From assembly GCA_964234715.1 (NCBI GenBank), contig OZ174282.1: 64,000 bases of DNA. One strand, given 5' to 3'. The notes beneath the pieces are model-generated. The model saw only the letters and a program-made list of their open reading frames with translations. It made no database searches and was not told the origin of the DNA. This stretch comes from Podarcis melisellensis (Eukaryota). The position numbers and the translations under genes were made by a program. This document shows, in pieces, positions 10,355 through 60,240 of the stretch; within the stretch, counting starts at the first letter, position 1, and the number at the start of each line of letters is the position of its first letter.

Positions 10355-12730
10355 TACTTGAGTCATATCATTGGTTCGCATTGCTCAGCATACATAGATT
10401 GGTGATGACAGTCCTTTAGATGTTCAGGCAGGAGTTTTTGCCAGCCCTACCTGGACTGAATTTGGAACCTTCTGCATGCAAATCAGATGCTCTACTGCTT
10501 GGGGGGCTGGGTTTTGTCATAAGTTCTATAGCATTTACTACTATATATGCTAATAAAAATTTGAAGTGGACCTCATGTTGAAGCTTTGGGTTCTGAAAGA
10601 ATGAAGGCTTCTGTTCTTGTTCCAGGGCTGTGATATTTTGGCTAAAGAGAAAAACAGCCCAGCTGTTGACATTCTTGGAAGTTCTTAGACAGTCTTCTCT
10701 GTCTTCCTGATGTGTCTTCTTTCTTCCCCGCCTCCTCCAGAGGCAGGGCTTCCTTCTCTTGCCTCTCCATGGCTGTGTGGCTTTGACTCACCCAGGGAGC
10801 AGCAGGAACTGCAGTGATGTCAGGCTGCGAGGAGGGAAGTGTGGGAGGAGACACACTGCCCTGTTTGGCTGGCTGGCTGGGAGCTCTTGTCCCTGCCACA
10901 TTTCATGGGATAAGGATGAGAGCAAGCAACACTGGTACTCAAGGCCTTGCTCCAGTCTTCAGTGTGGGTGATGCATTAACCCCAGCTTCAAGATGAAAGG
11001 GAAATACAAAGGTAATGGTCTCAGAATATGTCCACTTTTCTTCCTGACTTCCAAACCGTTGTGGTGGGATCCCTAAAATGAAAATCTTGGGAAGGGGGTT
11101 CCAGGCTGAAAAATGTTGAACTGTAAGCCAGGAACTTCTCTGGTTTAAATATCACCTCTGCCATGAAGTCTGGACATGGCCTCAAGCAAATTACAGCTTT
11201 TCAGCAACCCTCAAATGTGCAATATGATAAAACTGACTAGGCAGCCGGATAAGATTGTTTTTTTAAGGATTGCTCCAGTAATGCATGTGAAGACCTTAGA
11301 AAACGTTTAAAGCACTACTTAAACACTAGACAAACTTTGAACCTGAGACAAGGCAGTAGGTGGGATGTTTGCCTGCATGGCTCATTCTAAACTAGGTAAA
11401 TCCCAGTGGATAACAAGAAAGGAAAAGCTTGGAGAGGAGATAGGGACCACCCAGGTGAGCCAGTAGTGACTTTCTCTCTTCAGTGCACCAGGCTAAGTGA
11501 GTGTCAGGTCAAAAGCTTGTTTTCTGTGGCATATGAGTTACTAACTTTGTCTCTTGTTTAATGGCCTGTTGTTTAATTGTAGGATTGTAGTATTTTGGTA
11601 CTGTTTGAATTTTGTTACTGTGGTTGGGGGAAAAAAGTTTTTGTTTAAAAGTTATAAATCAGTAAACTAGAGGGGACTAGAGTTCGAGCTCTGGAGGAAT
11701 TTCAGGGATGGCTCATTTCTGCTTTTCTGGATTTAGGGCACAATGCTGCTCATTTTTGGCTGAATCTTGGGATGGAGATTCTATCGTCTTGTAAGCTGCA
11801 CATCTTGCACCCCAGTATTTGCTAAGGAGTGAGTCAGTAGGCCTGGGGCCACATAGCAGAGACAGTGGCAGTGAAACCTGGCTTTCAAGCTCCTGTTTTG
11901 TTTGTTTGTTCTTTTGTTTTGTAAGCAGATAAGATATTCCTGGTGCTCACATGTGAGCCACGTTCTCTTCCTCTTCCTTTGCTCAGTTATCCCTAATATA
12001 TAGGTTGACCTGATCTGAAGTATTGTGGGAGTGCTGGTGATACTCGCCAGGCCTCATTCCTGGTTTTGTTTTAAGTACTGGGCAGGATAGTTGGGAGGTT
12101 GCCAAAGGTGTTCACAAAGAGGCAGTGATTGGTTGGAAGAGGTATGACTGGATACAGGCATAGTGATGGTAGTGGTGTCAGAGAGGAAAGAGTTGGAGTA
12201 ATGGTGTTTAACTTAGACTAAGGAAGAATAAGTTTGAATCCTTATTCAACCACAAGTCTTACTGGATGACCTTCATTATTTCTGGAGATGATGTTAATGC
12301 TATAAATGTCTTGTTTTAAACAACATAGCTTTCATTTGGTGGTAACAGAGAATAGGGGCTTCAGTGCCTTAAATTCATTCATTTATTTACAGCATTTTTA
12401 TCTTGCCTTTGACTGGAAGGTCTCCAGGACAGCTTAAACAAAACATTTAAAAATAATATTAGTAATAAAATTGAACGTTGAAATGACCATGGAGCAAGTG
12501 TTAATAACACCGACACACCACAAGTAATCATTGAAATAGCTGTGCCATACCTTCTGTGCTAACAGCACTGTGTAGGTGTAGGTATCGGCAGTAGGTTTTC
12601 AAACTCTTTAAGTGTGGGTTTCACTGACAATTACTCAGGCGTAACAACATTTATTTGAGGAACAAGGAAAACAATTGATCTGAGTCTTTGGTTTACTGCA
12701 CATGCAGTTGTAACTAGAAGCTTCCTAAAC

Positions 12731-37100: not shown

Positions 37101-40100
37101 CTAGCAAGGGCTACAAAGAGTACACAGAGGTGAGTCAAGATGGCCTGGTACTGAGGGAGGAGGAAGGAAATGGTGGAATGGGGACCAGGCTTTGTGTTGC
37201 GTTTAATGTTGTGTTTGTGTTTTGTGTTGTGTTTAATGGGCAGTTGTTTGGTTTCTTCCCCTTCCAGAATATGTGTCTGTTGGAGAGTGAACTAGAGAGT
37301 CAGTTGGGAGAGTTCCACATCAAGATGAAAGGTACAGAAAGGAAAACAAGATGTCACATACAAAGGGATGTCTGGTGGCCATTTTGTAACTTGAAAAGCA
37401 GCTTTGGGGAGGGCATAACCCTGAGTGGGTGGGAGGGTTAACCCTTTTTCTTGAAAGCGGATGTTTTACACCAGATCCCATATATGAAATTCCAACTGCA
37501 AGTTTACCTCCTAAACATGTATCTGCACCCTATCCCACACCTCTTGTCATTTATTCAGCAAAATTGTGGGGTCATGACGGAGGCACTGACATTTTTTTCC
37601 CCCTCTTGCAGGATTGGCTGGCTTTGCTAGGCTCTGTGCTGGAGACCAATATGAGGTTTGTGAGTTAGAGATGGGCTCAGAACATGTGGAGAGGGAGGGG
37701 CTTGGGTCCTGGAAACTAGATGAACTGGAGTTGACCGAACAGCTTGTTGGAGGGGAATCTGGTCCCCCAGCACTGATTGCATTAGCTCTTGTCCAGCTCT
37801 AATAGGGTGCACACCTTGTTTCACGTCCATCCAGTTGATCTGAATTCTCTTATTCCTTGTGGCAGATCTTCATGAGATATGGGCGCCAGCGGTGGAAGCT
37901 GCGGGGCCGCATTGAGGCAAACAGCAAGCAAGTGTGGGACAGTGAGGAGATGATCTTCCTGCCCCTCATTACAGAGTTCCTGTCCATCAAGGTATCTGGT
38001 GCCACTCTGGGCAGCTGGCCCCTGTCACAGGAAAGACAATTCATTTCCTAGGCTTATTGGGCCTCAACTCTTCCTTCTCCTCCCAGGTAACAGAGCTGAA
38101 GAGCTTGGCCAGTCATGTGGTGGTGGGGAACGTCTCTTGTGAAACGAAGGACCTGTTTGCAGCACTGCCCCAGGTCGTGGCAGTAGATATCAATGACCTG
38201 GGCACCATCAAGCTGAGCCTGGAGGTTAATTGGAAGTGAGTTATTCTCTTGAGGCTTGTTGAGTTTCTCTGTTGTGGAGCTATGTTAGAAATGCTCTTGG
38301 GGAAGGAAGCTTGTGATCTTACAGAACCTGAAGCGAAGGGGCCTGGTAAGTGAGGGAACTGGGACCATGGTACTATAGATCCTCCTTCCCCAGCTTAGTG
38401 CCCTCCAGGTGTTTTGAACTACAATTCCCAACAGCCCATGGCAAGTATAACGTGCTGACTGGGACCAATGCGATCTGTGGTCCAAAACTTCTGGAAGGCT
38501 GCTCTGGATGGTGACTCCCCAAGAGGATTTAATAATGTGTGACCCTCCCTTTCTCTTCTTACATTAGTGTACAGGAGGGGTGGTTCACTTTTCTCTCTGA
38601 GCACTCTGCTTTCTTTTCACTAGCCCCTTTGACAAAGAGGACCAACCATCATCTGCTAGCACTGTGACAAAGACATCTACAGTCAACAAGAGATTTTCCA
38701 CGTACAACCAGAGCCCACCTGATACACCATCTATGCGTGAACAGGCTTTTTATGTGAGTGCAAAGGAAAAAAACCTGGAAGGGAATCAAAACCCACACTC
38801 CTGGTCCTAGTTGGGAGAACTGTAGCTTTCCTAAGTCCCACCAACTAAGTTTGTGGCTGAGATGTGGCTAAAAATCAGCAGCCTCCTGGATCGCAGCTCA
38901 GACTTTTAGCCACAATGCTATATGAGCTGGAGAGATCTTCAGAGCAAGTCCTACTTTGAACGTATTGCATTAAGGCATGTGGGAGAAGTGGAGGGGTCAA
39001 CACTTGTTCTCAGTCCAAGAAACCATAGTTTATCAAGTCAAGACTTTAGCATTTGAACCAAGCCTTTGTCTTGAGCTGAAGAAGCTGAGGAAATTAGTAC
39101 AGGAAAGGAGAGGACAACATCTGGTTGATTGGAGAAATGTCAGGTTATATATTTTTTTTAATGCATTTATATCCCAGCATTTCCTCCAAGGAGCTCAAGG
39201 TGGTGTGCATCATTCTCTTCCTCCTCATTTAATCCCCACAAGAACCCTGTGAAGCAGGTTAGGCTGAGAGGCAGTGATCTGCCCAAGGTCACCCAATGAG
39301 CATCATGGTTGAGCGGGGATTGGAACCCAGGTCTTTCAGGTCCCAGTCTGAGACTCTAACCAGTATCCCCACACTGGCAGATCGATCAGTTGTGGAAAGC
39401 AGAGTGGTCCTGATTGCCAGGGAGCGGAGTGGTCCTGATTGCCAGCAGATTGTCTGTAAGGCATGTGAGTCTCATGTTGTAATGGAGCTAAGCCCTTGGT
39501 GCTGACCGTTGCCTCTTTCTCCGCTCAAGAGCCTGCCACGGGAGGCTCCCCACAAGCACAGGTGGGCCTTGTTGGACATCTTCCGGGAGACTTTCCTAGA
39601 GAGGCTGCCGCGGAGCTGCTCATGCAGCGACGTCTCCTCAGTGCAGCTCGGCACAAGGGCAACTCGGGGCTGTGTAAGTTCTGGCCCTGTAGCTTAGCCT
39701 AGTCACCTGATGTAGATGTAGCTGTGCTCTGTCTCCCGTGTGCTAGTCTGTGGTTCCTGTTTCAAGGCCTGAATCAGAGCTGTGAATAAGACAAGTGGAT
39801 TCACTGCAGAATCTTCCCCTTCCCTCTGCCGCTTTGCAGTAGTGAGCAGTGGACTTCCCCTGTCTTCCCAGATTGTGGTGTTTTGTGGCGATCGTGTGCT
39901 TCCTTGTGCTGCCACTGAAGGCAGGGTGTGGATCATACAGGCTTTTGTCTGCTGCTTTTTGTAGTCATAGATTTCTTCCTCACACCAGTTTGCCTTCTGT
40001 AATATACCAGCCTTCTATGTGCTGCCCATGTTCATCATATGGCTGCCTTCTGGTGGATTTGGTGGCTGAGGAAGAGCTGCCTCCCTGTAGGCCAGGAATT

Positions 40101-40248
40101 GAGGAACCTTTGACCTTCCAGTTGATGATGATGAACTCCAACTCTCATCATCCCCAGCCAGCATTGCAAATGGTAAATTATGATGGGAGTTGAACATGTG
40201 GAGGATGACAGGTTTCCCCTCCCTGCTCTAGGCCTCCCAAGCTGACAT

Positions 40249-40297
<49 letters not shown>

Positions 40298-43200
40298 GGC
40301 TGTAGCTCAGTGGTAATTCAGATGCTTTGCCCAGAGAATGTACCAGGTTCAGTTCCTTGCAGCTCCAGGTACAGCTGGGAATGTCCCTTATCCCTGGCAA
40401 GATGCTATCAGTAAGTGTAGACAATACTGAGCTAGATGGACTATTGGTTTGACTCAGCATGAGGTGGCTTCCCATGTTCCTCTGTGTAATTTGTGGTATT
40501 TCCAAACTGGAGCAGGTATCTCAAGAAAGGAGGAAATGTCACCTTCAGGGAATTGCGCAACATTCCTTCGTCTGGGGTGCTACCTGAAATAAACAGTGAT
40601 TTCCTCCTTGTCTGCCACAAAGATTAGCAGAGAATTGGCATATAATTTGCCATGTGATTTGTGACATGTGGCTCAGTGCTGGGACCTGGCAAACAAACAA
40701 ATCACTCGTGTGTCTCATCTTGGCTGCAATCTCTGCCTTTATCCATGGGTGGTGGATGTATGGAGGAGTGGTGGAAGCTATGTAAAGAAGTACAAAGGGC
40801 TTTGAATAGAAAGGGTTGGGCTGGAGGGCTGGAAGCCAGTATTCCTCCAAGCAGCCTGTTAGAGAATGGTTAGGGGCTGAAATGTTTCTCAGGTGCCTTG
40901 CCATCTTGTTGAGGGCACCTTGAGTTGTCACAGCAAACCAAGAACAGGACAGCAAACCAAGAACATGAACTAGGAATAATGGCCCTCCTGGCCAGCTCTA
41001 GATCCAACCCCACTTGCAAGGGAGGTTGATTTAACTGCCCACAAGTAGATGGGCTGCTGCCTTGGAGTCTTGTCTCCAAGACTGTTGAGACTTGAAGCAG
41101 AGACTTGCTTTTGTCTGGAAGAGATGCAGCATCACACATCCTGGGCAAGCTGTCTTCTCCAGTGGGGAGCCGAGCCGCAAAATGATGACCAACATTTTGC
41201 GCTTCCTGCTCCTACCAAAGTTGCAGTCTCTCTGATATCCAGCATCTTTCCACCCAAAGGGCACAATCTCCCAAGTGTCTGTTGCTGGCCAAGTGAAGAG
41301 AGTGGGAGCTCAGTTGCAGCCTGGTATAACAATGGAGCTTATCAGGGGGTCAAGGGGCACAAATAAGGAAACCTCAGTGAAACCTCAGTGAGCCTGAAGA
41401 GTAAAGGAGTGGGGTGGTGGAAGGAAGTGATGGTGTTTATGCAGGGGTGTAGGCAGTGACAGATGTTTCCATGCTTTCACACATGCACTATGCTCAGTGC
41501 ATCCCTCATGTCTCATCTATGCTGCATTCTTTCCAGAACATGTTGCGGCAGCAGGAGGAGCTTGAGAATGGGGCAGCCTGGTCCATCTCTTCAGAGTCTT
41601 CGGATGATTCCTCTAGCCCACAGCTGTCTGGAAGTGCCCGCCATACACTCCCCAGGCCTATTGTGCAACCTGCAGTACAGGCAACTCCGCCTGCCATAGA
41701 AATTGCCTTTACGCAACCCGAGGACAAAGAGCCACCAGCCGTTCGCGAGGAGGTGGCTGTGGCTAACGGACATGTGCCCTATGCTCGGACTCTTAGTCAG
41801 ATCAGCGAAGCTAGTGTGGACCTGCCATTGGCAGAGGAAAAGGAGTGCACTGTCCCCAGAGACTCCAGTCCCAGGGACCTGCCTCCGCTGGAAACGAACT
41901 CCTTGCCCCAAAGTGCAGGCTCAGTGCTGGACACTCAGGTCATAGAGGCTGGAGAACAGGAGATTGAGCCTGACGGGGCCACTCCCACTGTAGAAGGGAG
42001 TGAGGACACAGCCTCCCAAGCCCAAGAGGTTGAACAGCCCAAGCTTTCATTGAGCCTGCCGGTCCCAAAGGAGCTTCAGCCAGTGGGACTCTTGGAGCCA
42101 CCAAAGCCCAAGCCTGTGGACTGTGGGCTGGAGGAGGCCATCAACTCACTGGCCTCTGCTCTAGATGACTACCGAGGCCAGTTCCCTGAGCTACAGACCT
42201 TGGAGCAGGAGCTCAAGCACCTAGAGGAGATTCTCTTGGTGAGTGAGAGGGGGTGAAGAAGACCATGGCTGGGGGAAGGACAGCATCCCTGGATCTGTGT
42301 ATATTTAGAGCTGAAATAAAATGTTTTAACCAAACTTTTCTGAATTCTGGAACTTGTGTGAATTGTGCAAACAAACCTCACTTTGTGCATATTTGCTTGT
42401 TGTTGTTTGCATAATTTGTGCCAACCATAGGGAAGAACAAAAGAATAATTTGTTGGACCCCTGAAGCCTCGCTCCCTGACCACTGCAAATCCTTTCTAGT
42501 GTTCCCACCCTGTCTGGTGAAGTTACTGTTGCAGATGCACATAAGCAGTTAACAAAATAGCAATATGTATATATAATAAAAAGAAAACAGAGAAACTACA
42601 ATGTAATAAAATCCATTGCAATGTAATATAAAGCAGAGCTACAATACAGTATAATAAAACAAGAACACCCCCCCCCCCAGAAATGTAACAACAGTTTTTG
42701 AAGCACCTTTAGAGTCCGGGGTCCCTTCCTTTTTCATCCTCTTGCCAAGGCGCATCCTGACTGACAGAATCCAACACTCAGCCCACCAACAGATACACAT
42801 AGAAGCCAAATTCTGCCTTACATATAGAAGCAAAAAAATATATGGTATGTTCCTTCTTCCCAGCATCGTTAAGTGCAACTTGAAAGCTGCATGGCACCTG
42901 AGGAAAATGAGTCTGAATGTCTGCCACCTCCTTCCACATTCCATCTGTGGAGATCAGATGGAGGTTCCCTGGCTTCACTCTCAGCCAAGTTCCCCCTCCC
43001 TTTCTCCCCCACCCCTGGGCCAGCCAGCTTTGTTTACCATCTAGCCTGTTAAAAGAGTTCTGGAGAACTTAAAAGCTTGCACACAAGTTTTGTGACATTT
43101 TGGTGGTTCTGATAAAAGCTATTGCCCAAATATTGCTTTTGACATTTTTCTTATGCTTTTATACTTATGAGATTAGAAGATGTCCCCTCCCTACAACTTT

Positions 43201-52700: not shown

Positions 52701-53789
52701 CACCAACCGTTATCACTAGAAACTAGGAGCCCAGGAGTCAGCATTGGCACAGAGCTGGTTGTATTTGTTATGGAGTGGGGTGAGATCCACAAGATCTGGC
52801 ATGGCACCCTGTAAATCTTCTAAAATGAAATGGAATCTGGACAATAGTTTTTAATAATTTAAAAGACCCACTAGCAGACCATCAAAGTGCAGCAGGAGGG
52901 GATTGTCAGCAGTTGCAATGCCACAAAAACTGTTGATCCAGGTGCCTGATTGGGGGGACCTGTTGCAATCAGGTCCTGCTTGTGGAGCTTCTCGTGGGCA
53001 TCTGGTTGGCCACTGTAAAAACAGGATACTGAGCTACATGAGTCATTGACCTGATCTAGCAGGCTCTTCTTATGTTCCCTTTCAAGTTCTGCTTAAATCA
53101 GCATGCCTGTTGCGGAGGGTATTTATTTACAAGTTCTAAAGTACTGCAAACAAGCAAAGATCAGCACAGGTACAAAATGAAGGGCAAATTCAAATAGAAT
53201 AGTGCAGTCATGCGCCAATTTGAACATGCAGAGGAAGCAAGACAATTGTTAAATGACTGGCTGATGGACAGAAAAGGGCACCTGGAAACAAACGGTGTTC
53301 AAAAGCTACTAAATGAGCTCTTCAGATGTATCAACTGACTATTCCTACAAGGGTAAATTCTTGTCAGCCTCATCAGTCTTCATTGTTTGATTGGGGAATT
53401 GGGTTCACATTCAAGAAAATATGAATGGACCATCATCAGCAAACAATATTGACCATACATTAATTTTGGAAGTGTAGTCTTATAGATGGCCACACAGCTG
53501 GTTGGATCACCCTTAGGCAACCAAGCAATGAAGTTTTATGAAATTGGGTGGGGGAGGGAATCACCCATTTTCAGGCCAGTGTGTTGCCAAGGAAGATGAC
53601 AGGGAAATTTTATGGTCTGACTCTGTAGACATGTGCAAGGCTGGGGCAAATAATATCGTAATTAACAGCTGATTGCTTTATCTGCTTGCAGGAGAAGATG
53701 GGAAATCTGCTCATCGACGTCTTGAAGAGTCTCTTGACAGTTTGCCCCGAATCTTTGCCCCGGGGAGCATGGCCAGCACTGCGTTCTGA
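28014..53789 (+). CDS. RIPOR1: RIPOR1 / FAM65A (RHO family interacting cell polarization regulator 1), spliced CDS, 21 exons, 1000 aa: join(28014-28114,32364-32516,33366-33444,34058-34081,36334-36387,36977-37129,37268-37331,37612-37655,37866-37991,38087-38235,38624-38753,41537-42238,43375-43490,45645-45825,46695-46830,47523-47684,48681-48839,49721-49917,50588-50671,50990-51080,53692-53789)
   Basis: Manual exon assembly. Every junction is AG/GT, phases are compatible, and the total is 3003 nt with no internal stop. The translation runs [99 protein letters not shown], matching human RIPOR1 as I recall it. Both termini are diagnostic versus RIPOR2/3. Confidence 0.97.
32364..32516 (+). CDS. RIPOR1: RIPOR1 coding exon 2
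   Basis: (R)[50 protein letters not shown](T); tttttag| ... |gtgagt; phase 2-2. Confidence 0.95.
32561..32652. repeat. Perfect 46-bp tandem duplication containing a palindrome
   Basis: cttgggtttcattgaaaccctcttaacctatggtgcctgtttcatt x2 (32561-32606, 32607-32652). Confidence 0.9.
33366..33444 (+). CDS. RIPOR1: RIPOR1 coding exon 3
   Basis: [26 protein letters not shown]; aacag| ... |gtgagt. Confidence 0.95.
34058..34081 (+). CDS. RIPOR1: RIPOR1 coding exon 4 (24-nt microexon)
   Basis: GFLYDLDK; long pyrimidine tract ending ctctag|, donor AAG|gtaagg. Confidence 0.93.
35335..35584. mobile_element. Tc1/mariner-type (Tc2/Tigger-like) MITE
   Basis: TA-CCGTATTTTTCGCTCTATAGGACGCAC ... GTGCATCCTATAGAGCAAAAAATAATG-TA. 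Confidence 0.75.
36334..36387 (+). CDS. RIPOR1: RIPOR1 coding exon 5
   Basis: [18 protein letters not shown]; tttcacag| ... |gtacca. Confidence 0.95.
36977..37129 (+). CDS. RIPOR1: RIPOR1 coding exon 6
   Basis: [51 protein letters not shown]; taacag| ... |gtgagt. Confidence 0.95.
37268..37331 (+). CDS. RIPOR1: RIPOR1 coding exon 7
   Basis: [21 protein letters not shown](G); ttccag| ... |gtacag. Confidence 0.95.
37612..37655 (+). CDS. RIPOR1: RIPOR1 coding exon 8
   Basis: (G)[14 protein letters not shown]; ttgcag| ... |gtttgt. Confidence 0.95.
37866..37991 (+). CDS. RIPOR1: RIPOR1 coding exon 9
   Basis: [42 protein letters not shown]; ggcag| ... |gtatct. Confidence 0.95.
38087..38235 (+). 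CDS. RIPOR1: RIPOR1 coding exon 10
   Basis: [49 protein letters not shown](N); tcccag| ... |gtgagt. Confidence 0.95.
38624..38753 (+). CDS. RIPOR1: RIPOR1 coding exon 11
   Basis: [43 protein letters not shown]; cactag| ... |gtgagt. Confidence 0.95.
39160..39372 (-). mobile_element. MIR/CORE-type SINE
   Basis: cacaagaaccctgtgaag..gttaggctgagaggcagtga..cccaaggtcaccca..ggattggaacccaggtc; the opposite-orientation copy is at about 57590-57762. Confidence 0.7.
39530..39673 (+). CDS. RIPOR1: Putative alternative (cassette) coding exon of RIPOR1, 48 aa, phase 0-0
   Basis: [48 protein letters not shown]. Branch-like gctgac at 39501, pyrimidine tract ending AAG|, donor |GTAAGT, 144 nt and stop-free. 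Resembles the RIPOR2 segment ..RRLSVLSALQDTFFAKLHRSRSFSDLPSL.. (recalled) at the same position. Confidence 0.7.
40247..40294. repeat. (GT)n microsatellite
   Basis: Near-perfect GT run directly 5' of a SINE head. Confidence 0.95.
40297..40481 (+). mobile_element. tRNA-derived SINE (Squam3-like)
   Basis: gggctgtagctcagtgg...ccaggttcagttcc...agacaatactgagctagatggac...ttcccatgttcct. Confidence 0.75.
41537..42238 (+). CDS. RIPOR1: RIPOR1 coding exon 12 (large, mostly low-complexity linker)
   Basis: [32 protein letters not shown] ... [37 protein letters not shown]; ttccag| ... |gtgagt; lies within ORF 41456-42256. Confidence 0.96.
43375..43490 (+). CDS. RIPOR1: RIPOR1 coding exon 13
   Basis: [38 protein letters not shown](G); ccacag| ... 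|gtgagt. Confidence 0.94.
43651..43707. repeat. (TAT)n microsatellite
   Basis: About 19 perfect TAT units. Confidence 0.95.
45645..45825 (+). CDS. RIPOR1: RIPOR1 coding exon 14
   Basis: [11 protein letters not shown]...[26 protein letters not shown]; ttcacag| ... |gtgagt; the 5' part is divergent so the exact acceptor is slightly less certain. Confidence 0.88.
46695..46830 (+). CDS. RIPOR1: RIPOR1 coding exon 15
   Basis: [45 protein letters not shown]; cctag| ... |gtaagg. Confidence 0.95.
47523..47684 (+). CDS. RIPOR1: RIPOR1 coding exon 16
   Basis: (V)[53 protein letters not shown]; ctctcag| ... |gtgggt. Confidence 0.95.
48681..48839 (+). CDS. RIPOR1: RIPOR1 coding exon 17
   Basis: (V)[52 protein letters not shown]; ccacag| ... 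|gtatat. Confidence 0.95.
49721..49917 (+). CDS. RIPOR1: RIPOR1 coding exon 18 (ARM/HEAT-like C-terminal region)
   Basis: (V)[65 protein letters not shown]; ctgtag| ... |gtaaat. Confidence 0.95.
50001..50356 (-). mobile_element. Full-length Sauria SINE with TSD (intron 18)
   Basis: Same family as the 17382 copy (aaggtaaagg tail, cacggaaacgccgtttaccttccc core, ttaacccacagcgccacc head); TSD TACACTA at 49994-50000 and 50357-50363. Confidence 0.9.
50588..50671 (+). CDS. RIPOR1: RIPOR1 coding exon 19
   Basis: [28 protein letters not shown]; tcccag| ... |gtgagg. Confidence 0.95.
50990..51080 (+). CDS. RIPOR1: RIPOR1 coding exon 20
   Basis: [30 protein letters not shown]; caatag| ... |gtgagt. Confidence 0.95.
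53692..53789 (+). CDS. RIPOR1: RIPOR1 last coding exon (to TGA)
   Basis: (G)[31 protein letters not shown]; ttgcag|; stop TGA 53787-53789. Confidence 0.96.
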
Positions 53790-57600: not shown

Positions 57601-58839
57601 ATGAAGCTCACTGGTGACCTTGGGCCAGTCATTGCCTCTCAGCCTAACCTACCTCACAGGGTTTTTGGGAGGATGAAATGGAGAAGAGTACCACCTTCAG
57701 ATTCTTGGAACACCACCTTCAGATTCTTGGAAGATAAAGGGGGTATATAAATGTAATTAATAAAAAATATATATGTTGATTTCTTCTAGGAGAGAACTGT
57801 TCTTTTGTAGAAAACGCTGCTTCCCTTCAAGATGGCATCTTCTGCTGCAAGGCCACAAAAATTACCACAGCTCCAATTAAAGAACTAGGATTAATTAAAG
57901 AATAGGGATTAGAGATATATAGAGGATATTTTGTGGTGAGGGGAGGTATATAAATACTATTAAAGTAGAAGAAATGTATTTTAAAACAACCACCAAACAT
58001 ATAGTCGCTACATTCATGTTACATATGCAGCAAGGAACACCCTGAATAACTATAATCCACTGGCTCCATAAGGACAGGTAAGGGGGTTCTAGACAGAGCT
58101 ACTTCCCATTTTAGAAACCAAGCACCATTTTAAAGTAAAATCTAAACTGCCTGAATGTGGAATGGGACACTAGCAAATCTCTTTAATACGTTTTCTGCTG
58201 AATTTCTGGTAATCACTTTCAACTACAAACTGTTCTCTTAGATATTTGAAGAGGGGTGGGAATCCTTCACTAAAAACTGGGATGGGTTGTAGTTAGTTTA
58301 CCTACATTCCAGGTACGGCTACAAATACTGTATGGACTTTGAAAGGACATCAACCCACCTGTTGTGATCCTTTCCCTAGTTAGGGTCAATTTACCTGATT
58401 ACTGTGTCTTTCAAGTAAGACAAATGAGATTTGAAAAGCAAACATCCCCATGACTTTTAAAGATTGTAAATCTTTAAAATTTTAAAAGATTTAAAAGACT
58501 GTAGATCCCCCCCCCCCCGCTCTTTTGGGTATCAGGGCTTTAATGGCTGTGCATCAAATTAAAAAGGACAGCAGTATTTCTCACCACAGATATACATTAA
58601 GTACTTAATCCGAGATACCACTGTACACTGACAGGTGGCAGCTTTGCCTGTTGAATTTCTGCCTACTATGGGATTGTTAAAGGTTTAATTCTAATATAAA
58701 AATAAGTGGCATATCTATTTTGAGGCAAAGGTGTGCAACCACAAACTGCCTCTGACAAGCTGCAGTTAACTTACATATCCAAGCTCGCCTGTTTTGGTTT
58801 TGGACACGTTTGCACCAATTTGCTCCTGATTATACCAAC

Positions 58840-60240
58840 ACGACGCCCGTGACACCCCCGCCCGTTGACAGAGATTTTCCTTTCTCGGCAGGTGGCAACA
58901 GGGCAAACGTCACCTCAAGAGGGCGCCACACCGCGGAACCAATCCCATTGCCCGCGCTTGCAACGTGCAAGTGCTCTGCACCCTCGGCCCAGGCCGCGCG
59001 TGACGTCACAGCGCCACCCGCCCTCACGTCCGCCGCGGCCCTTCTAGGTCCTCTATTTGAAGTTGGCGCCCAGCGGCTCCTCCCATGGTGCTCCGCGCGG
59101 CCGCTTCTCCCGCTCCCTCCTCCCTTCGCTCGGCTTCGGCGGCCGCGGCTGCCGGGCTGGCGCAGGCGCACTGTTCGTCTCGGCCGCCATTTTGTGTCCG
59201 AGGCGACTGTGGAACGATTAAACCGCGAGCTGGTGCTGGGCGCTGGCGGCGGCCGCTAGCGGCGGGGCAGCGGCAGTAGGAGCTCCGCAGGGCCCGAGCG
59301 GGGCGGGGCCCGGGGCAGCAGGGGCGGCCCGGAGGCGCCTCCGGGACAGGTAAGCAGCGCGGGGGGTTTGCAGTCGCTTTCTCCGGCCTCTAGGTGTCAC
59401 GATGGGGCTCGGGCTGGGACCCGCCGCGGCGCCGCCGATGGGGAGCGGGGCTTTGTCTCCCTCTACCGTCCCCATCGCCCTGATGCCGGCCTGGTACTGC
59501 CGCCCATCGGCCTCCCAGAGCAGCGCCTCTGCCGGAACCAGGCCGGGCCTGGATAAATAGACAGAGGCGCGGCTGCTTAGCTCGGCCTTGCCCAACCCGC
59601 CGCCGCCTCACCCTCTCCGCCGCCGCCAACCACGGCCTGCTGGAGTGACTCGGGTTTTATTTAACTCGTCCGCCATTATGGAAACGACTAACCCCGGGCG
59701 TTCCTGTCCCCGCAAAAAACCTCTGTTCAAAACACCCACCCGCCCGCCTTGATCCTGGCCGAGTCGATTGGGTTTCCTCCCCCCCCCCCGTTTCCCAGCT
59801 CCTCCCGAGCCGCCCCCATAAACCTGCGGCCTAATCCTGCCACCTCCCGCCTCTTCTGGCTCGCTTCTCGTTCCGCCCGGTCGCCTCCGCCCCGCGTCGA
59901 TTCCCGCCCGTCTCCGCTTCTGCTTTTCTCTCCCTCCTCCCCATGCCCGGACGTCCTCGTCCCGTCCCAGCTGACCGTCCCCGGCCTGCTCCGTCCGCGT
60001 CCTTTTCCCCCGATGGTCCTGCGTGTCCGCGCTGCCCGTCCCTGCCCGCCTGCTCCCGCCGGCCGCCGCCTCGCTGTGCGCGCTGCGGAGTGAGAGGCGC
60101 TGCGAGCTCAAGATCGGGACTCGAGCTCCCTCTTGCAAGGCAGGCTGAGCTGCAGCGCCATGCAGCGCGGGAGAGCGCCAGGCGGGGACGCCCGAGCTCG
60201 CCCGCCCGGCCTGGAACCGGGAAGGAGCTCACGCGGGGCT
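58840..60240 (+). promoter_or_regulatory. CTCF: CpG-island promoter of CTCF
   Basis: The only dense CpG/GC island in the window. CCAAT 58939-58943, full CRE TGACGTCA 59001-59008, NRF1-like GCGCAGGCGCA 59160-59170, YY1 GGCCGCCATTTTG 59182-59194. RIPOR1 followed by CTCF on the same strand is the known amniote gene order. Confidence 0.85.
59180..59349 (+). other. CTCF: CTCF non-coding exon 1 (5'UTR); TSS approximate; donor CAG|GTAAGC at 59349/59350
   Basis: GCCATTTTGTGTCCGAG..CTGTGGAACGATTAAACCG closely matches the start of human CTCF mRNA as I recall it (GCCATTTTGTGTCTGAGCCTGTGGAGCGATTAAACCG); strong 5' splice site. Confidence 0.8.

Follow-up and report, generated by a model that had tools for sequence, protein, structure and literature searches.

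A probable low-inclusion cassette exon of lizard RIPOR1 with counterparts in birds and ray-finned fishes

The locus described here raises the question of whether an open segment within an intron is a coding exon that squamate gene models lack. The segment lies at positions 39530-39673 of a 64,000-nucleotide (nt) stretch of Podarcis melisellensis DNA (assembly GCA_964234715.1, contig OZ174282.1), which we call the window, between exons 11 and 12 of the gene RIPOR1. A first-pass annotation, made from the letters alone, had proposed that it is a real, optional, in-frame and ancient RIPOR1 cassette, and this proposal is borne out by joints in RNA, by synonymous divergence and by orthologues in birds and fishes. 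The segment is very probably a genuine alternative cassette exon of lizard RIPOR1 with low inclusion, orthologous to the cassette of 47-49 amino acids found in birds and ray-finned fishes. Taken together, the splice junction, the synonymous-only divergence and the deep orthologues place it far beyond chance.

The segment and its host gene

The RIPOR1 proteins of Anolis, duck and sturgeon were mapped to the window by tblastn, where they fall as collinear exons on the + strand from about 27945 to 53786. The first exons in the window are 92-100% identical to the Anolis carolinensis RIPOR1 model, and the cassette itself was placed by collinear tblastn with an E value of 3e-5. RIPOR1 orthologues contain the Pfam PL48 domain and HEAT repeats; together with the collinear series of matches, these domains show that the window holds the lizard RIPOR1 orthologue. 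The insertion point of the cassette corresponds to position 343 of the 346 positions of the PL48 profile, while forms that skip it match all 346. The features of the region are as follows.

38624-38753, + strand: upstream constitutive RIPOR1 exon (exon 11), ending in ..EQAFY in phase 0; found by tblastn, with RNA contigs of three runs and raw reads ending at 38753
39501-39506, + strand: branch-point-like GCTGAC with its A 24 nt 5' of the acceptor; putative function
39510-39529, + strand: CU-rich tract and weak AAG acceptor, the AAG itself at 39527-39529
39530-39673, + strand: alternative cassette exon (very probable) of 144 nt and 48 codons, without a stop, phase 0-0
39560-39604, + strand: short helix predicted by AlphaFold for codons 11-25, containing most of the invariant residues
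39614-39640, + strand: S-C-S-C-S-D-V-S-S cluster, codons 29-37, with an invariant Cys pair; predicted to be unstructured
39674-39679, + strand: consensus GTAAGT donor, used in a GT..AG joint to 41537 in two runs
39680-39765, + strand: conserved downstream intronic blocks, candidate splicing-regulatory elements, of which 39718-39736 is identical in Phrynosoma
41537-42238, + strand: downstream large constitutive exon (exon 12), starting with NMLRQQ..; found by tblastn, and the acceptor for both the skip and the cassette joints

This anatomy agrees with the first-pass description of a stop-free, phase 0-0 segment with a gctgac, a pyrimidine tract, an AAG acceptor and a GTAAGT donor, flanked by exons that end in AFY and begin with NML. 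Inclusion of the segment preserves the frame, as its length is a multiple of three, it contains no stop and both neighbouring junctions are in phase 0. Its stop-free length was rejected as evidence for an exon and says nothing by itself, because the 2.8-kb host intron holds about 25 open stretches of at least 40 codons on the + strand. The base composition of the cassette (GC content 0.64, CpG observed/expected ratio 0.54) differs from that of the intron (0.49 and 0.16, respectively). The cassette is single-copy within the window, no repeat covers it and the high-depth repeats lie elsewhere in the intron; exonisation of a transposon was rejected on these grounds.

The intron and the region beyond the gene have several further features. 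A tandem duplication with a 23-nt unit and 25-nt spacing, 96% identical, lies at 39398-39445, about 85 nt 5' of the cassette acceptor, and is absent from the Phrynosoma alignment. A GT/CA dinucleotide microsatellite occupies 40243-40303, one frame of which reads as a Val-Cys run. A stretch resembling a CpG island at 58001-60000 (GC content 0.565, CpG observed/expected ratio 0.89), a few kb beyond the last RIPOR1 exon match at 53786, is probably the promoter of the next gene.

Splicing, divergence and orthologues

Most sampled words of the 144 nt occur in fourteen small, transcriptome-sized assemblies from four organisms. RNA data mapped on 38560-41860 comprised transcriptome contigs of three runs (X1, X6 and X7) and one raw bulk RNA-seq run (X23). 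The GT..AG joint 38753>41537, which skips the cassette, was found in all four runs, with contig depths of 47, 67 and 40 and, in X23, 17 raw reads with 13 starts; its presence in the contigs indicates that the presumed RNA runs are really cDNA. The GT..AG joint 39673>41537, which leads from the cassette to exon 12, was found in X1 (depth 4.75) and X6 (depth 4.4), that is, in two species, at depths 10-15 times lower than those of the skip joint. Inclusion thus amounts to about 9% in X1 and about 6% in X6. No inclusion was detected in X7 or in X23, the latter being without any read on the cassette. In X6, a 176-nt contig opens with 9 letters that found no place in the region, covers precisely 39530-39673 and ends with 23 letters of exon 12, and the X6 coverage over the cassette is exon-shaped, with zero in the adjacent intron bins. 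Use of the cassette donor is demonstrated in two species; for the acceptor at 39530, one species provides indirect support.

The same data yielded three side observations. The first mate of X23 reads on RIPOR1 exons always lies on the minus strand, as expected if the library is stranded and the gene lies on the + strand. The organism of X23 is a close relative of the window species with fixed differences such as 38651 A>G and 38678 T>A. In all RNA runs, contig depth rises to hundreds or thousands at 39226-39336 and 40336-40446, where loose ends are numerous and joints irregular (such as 39269>40418). These two stretches act like fragments of an abundant interspersed repeat with transcripts from many loci and do not resemble RIPOR1 exons.

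In the RIPOR1 locus of Phrynosoma platyrhinos (L001), the cassette is found at 12191-12334 with the same AAG acceptor and GTAAGT donor as in the window. Stops or frameshifts in another squamate, which the first-pass annotation had named as grounds for giving up its proposal, were absent: all 48 codons are open and the frame is intact. Forty-two of the 48 residues are identical to those of the window, and the six amino-acid differences all fall in codons 4-8 and 45. Codons 9-44 differ by 12 synonymous and 0 non-synonymous changes, corresponding to a synonymous divergence (dS) of 0.73 and a non-synonymous divergence (dN) of 0, and the dN/dS of the cassette is about 0.12. When 12 changes were placed at random 200000 times, a fully synonymous outcome never arose. 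The two alternative frames are each interrupted by a stop in one of the two species. Nucleotide identity to Phrynosoma is 87% in the cassette, compared with 132/267 plus 66 gaps in the 300 nt upstream and 196/295 in the 300 nt downstream, and the large constitutive exon has only 75% protein identity. As judged by sequence comparison, purifying selection on the reading frame is shown both between two lizard families and across bony vertebrates. The intron blocks 39718-39736 (19 nt) and 39836-39852 (17 nt) are identical in Phrynosoma amid otherwise diverged intron and are candidate splicing-regulatory elements for the cassette. The locus of Lerista edwardsae (L002) was uninformative: it shows assembly gaps 1.2 kb beyond exon 11 and lacks an exon 12 over 10 kb.

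A phmmer search of the cassette peptide against 1.84 billion representative sequences gave 11 matches with E values down to 1e-12. Five of these (P0001, P0005, P0008, P0009 and P0011) match in multiple stretches of 2-10 bits each; they were set aside because tandem repeats inflate the score and the proteins, one of them a toad repeat protein and another an NB-ARC protein of kiwifruit, are unrelated. The genuine matches (E 1e-12 to 8e-7 library-wide) are short open-reading-frame fragments of genomic contigs and a 1125-amino-acid RIPOR1-like isoform X2 of Acipenser ruthenus. Further models came from word searches that used the cassette-bearing part of the sturgeon and duck proteins as query. The named RIPOR1 models that carry the cassette come from the fishes Polyodon, Polypterus, Pygocentrus, Astyanax and Denticeps and from the birds Cairina, Lamprotornis, two Corvus species, Melanerpes and Mycteria. 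In 18 models, 47-49 amino acids stand between EQAFY and NMLR, while sturgeon isoform X3, unlike X1 and X2, joins EQAFY directly to NMLR, so that the cassette is optional in sturgeon. As far as these alignments tell, it is protein-coding since the ancestor of bony vertebrates.

The lizard exon shares with the bird and fish cassette the host gene, the insertion point between EQAFY and NML, the length, the phase 0-0 and the same invariant residues. It differs in being absent from every lizard protein model found and in being a minor form in the sampled RNA. In the alignment of cassette peptides (A1), eleven residues are invariant (W12, L14, D16, R19, T21, E24, L26, C30, C32, D34 and V35) and six are nearly so, S29, S31 and S37 among them, and the rows other than Phrynosoma are 46-67% identical to the window peptide. 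A13, F22, R25 and P27 set the lizard peptide apart from most other RIPOR1 cassettes, which have S, L, K and S, respectively, at these sites.

The AAG acceptor and GTAAGT donor are also present in a sauropsid contig (L003), on which exon 10, exon 11 and the cassette follow one another, and in a teleost contig (L004). In the branch-point region, CTGAC is common to the window and L003, and Phrynosoma has TTGAT. About 40 nt upstream and 90 nt downstream of the cassette are conserved among the three sauropsids. A weak acceptor conserved over a long time is what is expected of a regulated alternative exon, and the AAG acceptor, kept from teleost to lizard, would fit this expectation.

The first-pass annotation had seen the cassette as something kept in lizards. 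This does not hold, since gene models of many birds and ray-finned fishes include it and squamate annotation lacks it. No squamate or mammalian protein with the cassette was found in any search made; the squamate models retrieved (Anolis, Micrurus and Phrynosoma) and three partial primate models are skip forms. The cassette is thus already in bird and fish annotation and is new for squamates.

The encoded peptide and its relation to RIPOR2

AlphaFold predicted, on A1, a single helix for residues 11-25 with a predicted local distance difference test score (pLDDT) of about 75, followed by a disordered tail. The N-terminal region of the duck protein with the cassette gave a poor model with a mean pLDDT of 45, from which no docking can therefore be inferred. 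The first-pass annotation had compared the lizard RSCSCS with a phosphorylation or 14-3-3-type RSRSFS and suggested a rewiring in lizards. The Cys-x-Cys pattern is instead an ancient fixed feature, as no RIPOR1 orthologue, from bichir to birds, departs from C30 and C32. A conserved 14-3-3 mode-1 site (R-S-x-pS-x-P) was likewise rejected: position 28 alternates between R and Q and no Pro follows S31 or S33 at +2, so that a context of this type is not conserved.

An optional exon at an equivalent position of the paralogous gene RIPOR2, to which the first-pass annotation had pointed, finds support in the published size and position of that exon. In the mouse, an isoform of Fam65b (RIPOR2) without exon 13 exists, and the form with exon 13 occurs in brain, cerebellum, spinal cord and retina only (PMC4898930, eLife 2016). 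In human RIPOR2, exactly 150 nt, or 50 amino acids, separate transcript 1 from transcript 6 (PMC9740487). Residues 566-569 of RIPOR2 are encoded in exon 14. Phosphoserine 341 has the same number in both isoform numberings, whereas 523 and 535 become 573 and 585, and the shift arises after residue 344. The size of the exon, the residues in exon 14 and the shift in numbering together place an optional 150-nt exon directly before the RIPOR2 large exon, a place equivalent to that of the RIPOR1 cassette. Like the cassette, with its 48 amino acids, RIPOR2 exon 13 is thus optional, in frame and situated between the PL48 region and the large exon, which it immediately precedes, and it encodes 50 amino acids. 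Its neural restriction is a finding on mouse RIPOR2 and would be a prediction for RIPOR1. The invariant Cys-x-Cys of the RIPOR1 cassette stands where the first-pass annotation put Ser, Arg and Phe in RIPOR2.

The RIPOR2 string given there scored 13.3 bits against the A1 profile, a score reached by 0 of 1000 shuffles; this is a lead, conditional on the string being true RIPOR2 sequence. In the library-wide phmmer search with the lizard peptide, no RIPOR2 representative reached an E value of 1e-3, and a word search for RIPOR2 proteins gave RIPOR1-type proteins only among the best 120 matches. The PDB returned no RIPOR protein. Among teleosts, many models (P0069-P0102) are of the RIPOR1 type in their sequence, including some that the source labels RIPOR2-like.

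A short RIPOR1-like paralogue of teleosts has an optional insert of 44 amino acids at its EQVFY/SLLKRQ junction, present in 15 models and missing from about 40. This insert resembles the cassette in its junction, its optional use, its similar length and its S-x-P start, but it does not keep the Cys pair and its similarity to A1 is weak. Most single inserts score no better than shuffles against A1, and hhalign gives P 0.016 with the two in register; we did not regard this as significant and rejected the inserts as sequence homologues of the cassette.

Competing readings and the proposed role

Four other readings of the segment were weighed. A chance open stretch, accompanied by cryptic splice-site noise and without function, would be in keeping with the abundance of long open stretches in this intron, with the low inclusion and with the absence of the segment from one raw RNA run. 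However, it leaves unexplained why the differences from Phrynosoma in codons 9-44 are all synonymous beside an upstream intron that can barely be aligned, why the same peptide occurs at the same junction in birds and fishes and why the splice sites are conserved down to teleosts; it is effectively refuted, and we give it almost no credence. Alternatively, the segment might be conserved for a non-coding role, for instance as an enhancer within the intron or a regulator of splicing, and be open by accident, which would account for the partial conservation of the downstream flanking intron. Substitutions placed almost only at synonymous positions of one frame, stops in the other two, the coding calls of gene-prediction pipelines in many species and the presence of the cassette in spliced contigs make this highly improbable. 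The segment could also be a relic exon, spliced at trace level in lizards and no longer used functionally, as may hold in mammals. Inclusion of 0-9% in four runs and the missing entry in every squamate annotation found would suit such a relic, but a core dS of 0.73 with a dN of 0 shows recent selection in squamates, and the conservation of the weak acceptor, too, is what a regulated exon would show, so that we consider a relic improbable.

The remaining reading accepts a real RIPOR1 cassette and gives it an origin independent of RIPOR2 exon 13, the shared position and size being a coincidence or the mark of a favoured intron. The failure of the phmmer search to reach RIPOR2 and the weak similarity of the teleost paralogue inserts at the same junction speak for it. 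Against it, each of the two exons follows PL48 and immediately precedes the large exon, in phase 0-0, with 144 and 150 nt and optional use, and the RIPOR2 string of the first-pass annotation, if it is true RIPOR2 sequence, outscores all shuffles against A1; on balance we regard an independent origin as rather unlikely.

The reading preferred here, a genuine cassette exon of lizard RIPOR1 with a regulated function, has results that weigh against it as well. In the RNA data, the raw run X23 gave zero inclusion (0 of 17 junction reads), the X1 junction contig retains intron sequence 5' of the cassette as far as 39248, X7 offers nothing but an unspliced contig at the cassette, and the sides of the cassette junctions span 23-29 nt at depths of about 4-5. 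Of the two joints that the first-pass annotation had predicted, 39673>41537 was seen in the X1 and X6 contigs and 38753>39530 was not among the joints listed, the signal for the acceptor being the exact boundary of the X6 contig at 39530 with the unplaced letters before it. As for the peptide, a Pfam search returned nothing and no known motif matched. The helix was predicted again in the context of the domain, but with low confidence, and an amphipathic membrane-binding helix was rejected, the hydrophobic moment being 0.05 with 98% of shuffles higher. Neural enrichment is a suggestion by analogy with RIPOR2, and the link to RIPOR2 is drawn from the literature.

If the segment is such a cassette exon, the weak AAG acceptor would make skipping the default state, and inclusion would be triggered by an activator specific to the cell type or by a lifting of repression that acts via the conserved blocks of the flanking intron. 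By analogy with the equally placed RIPOR2 exon 13, this would most likely happen in neural tissue. Inclusion would add 48 residues exactly where the RHO-binding PL48 domain ends on its C-terminal side, ahead of an acidic, Ser-rich stretch. The insert would form a short helix that carries the invariant W, L, D, R, T, E and L, followed by the S-C-S-C-x-D-V-x-S cluster, and may act as an isoform-specific docking and modification module. Acylation of the Cys residues or phosphorylation of the Ser residues may, speculatively, change its partners or its localisation at membranes or the Golgi. A further-reaching scenario is possible but doubtful, namely that a neurally regulated RIPOR cassette existed before the duplication, that RIPOR1 has kept its Cys-x-Cys and helix for more than 400 million years as a lipidation, redox or docking switch, and that the cassette was lost or silenced in mammals and has therefore gone unseen in the human and mouse literature.

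No description of the cassette for RIPOR1 was found in the literature searched; a TDP-43 paper that names Ripor1 reports an expression change only. The squamate RIPOR1 models of Anolis, Micrurus and Phrynosoma lack a conserved coding exon that is found in bird and fish models, an omission that can be corrected in the annotation. For the RIPOR family, the cassette suggests that the edge of the RHO-binding domain has an optional module of deep conservation, placed like the exon of the RIPOR2 isoform of brain, retina and spinal cord. This raises the testable idea that a neuron-type isoform switch of RIPOR proteins may predate the split of the paralogues, for which the invariant Cys pair would be an obvious target of mutagenesis.

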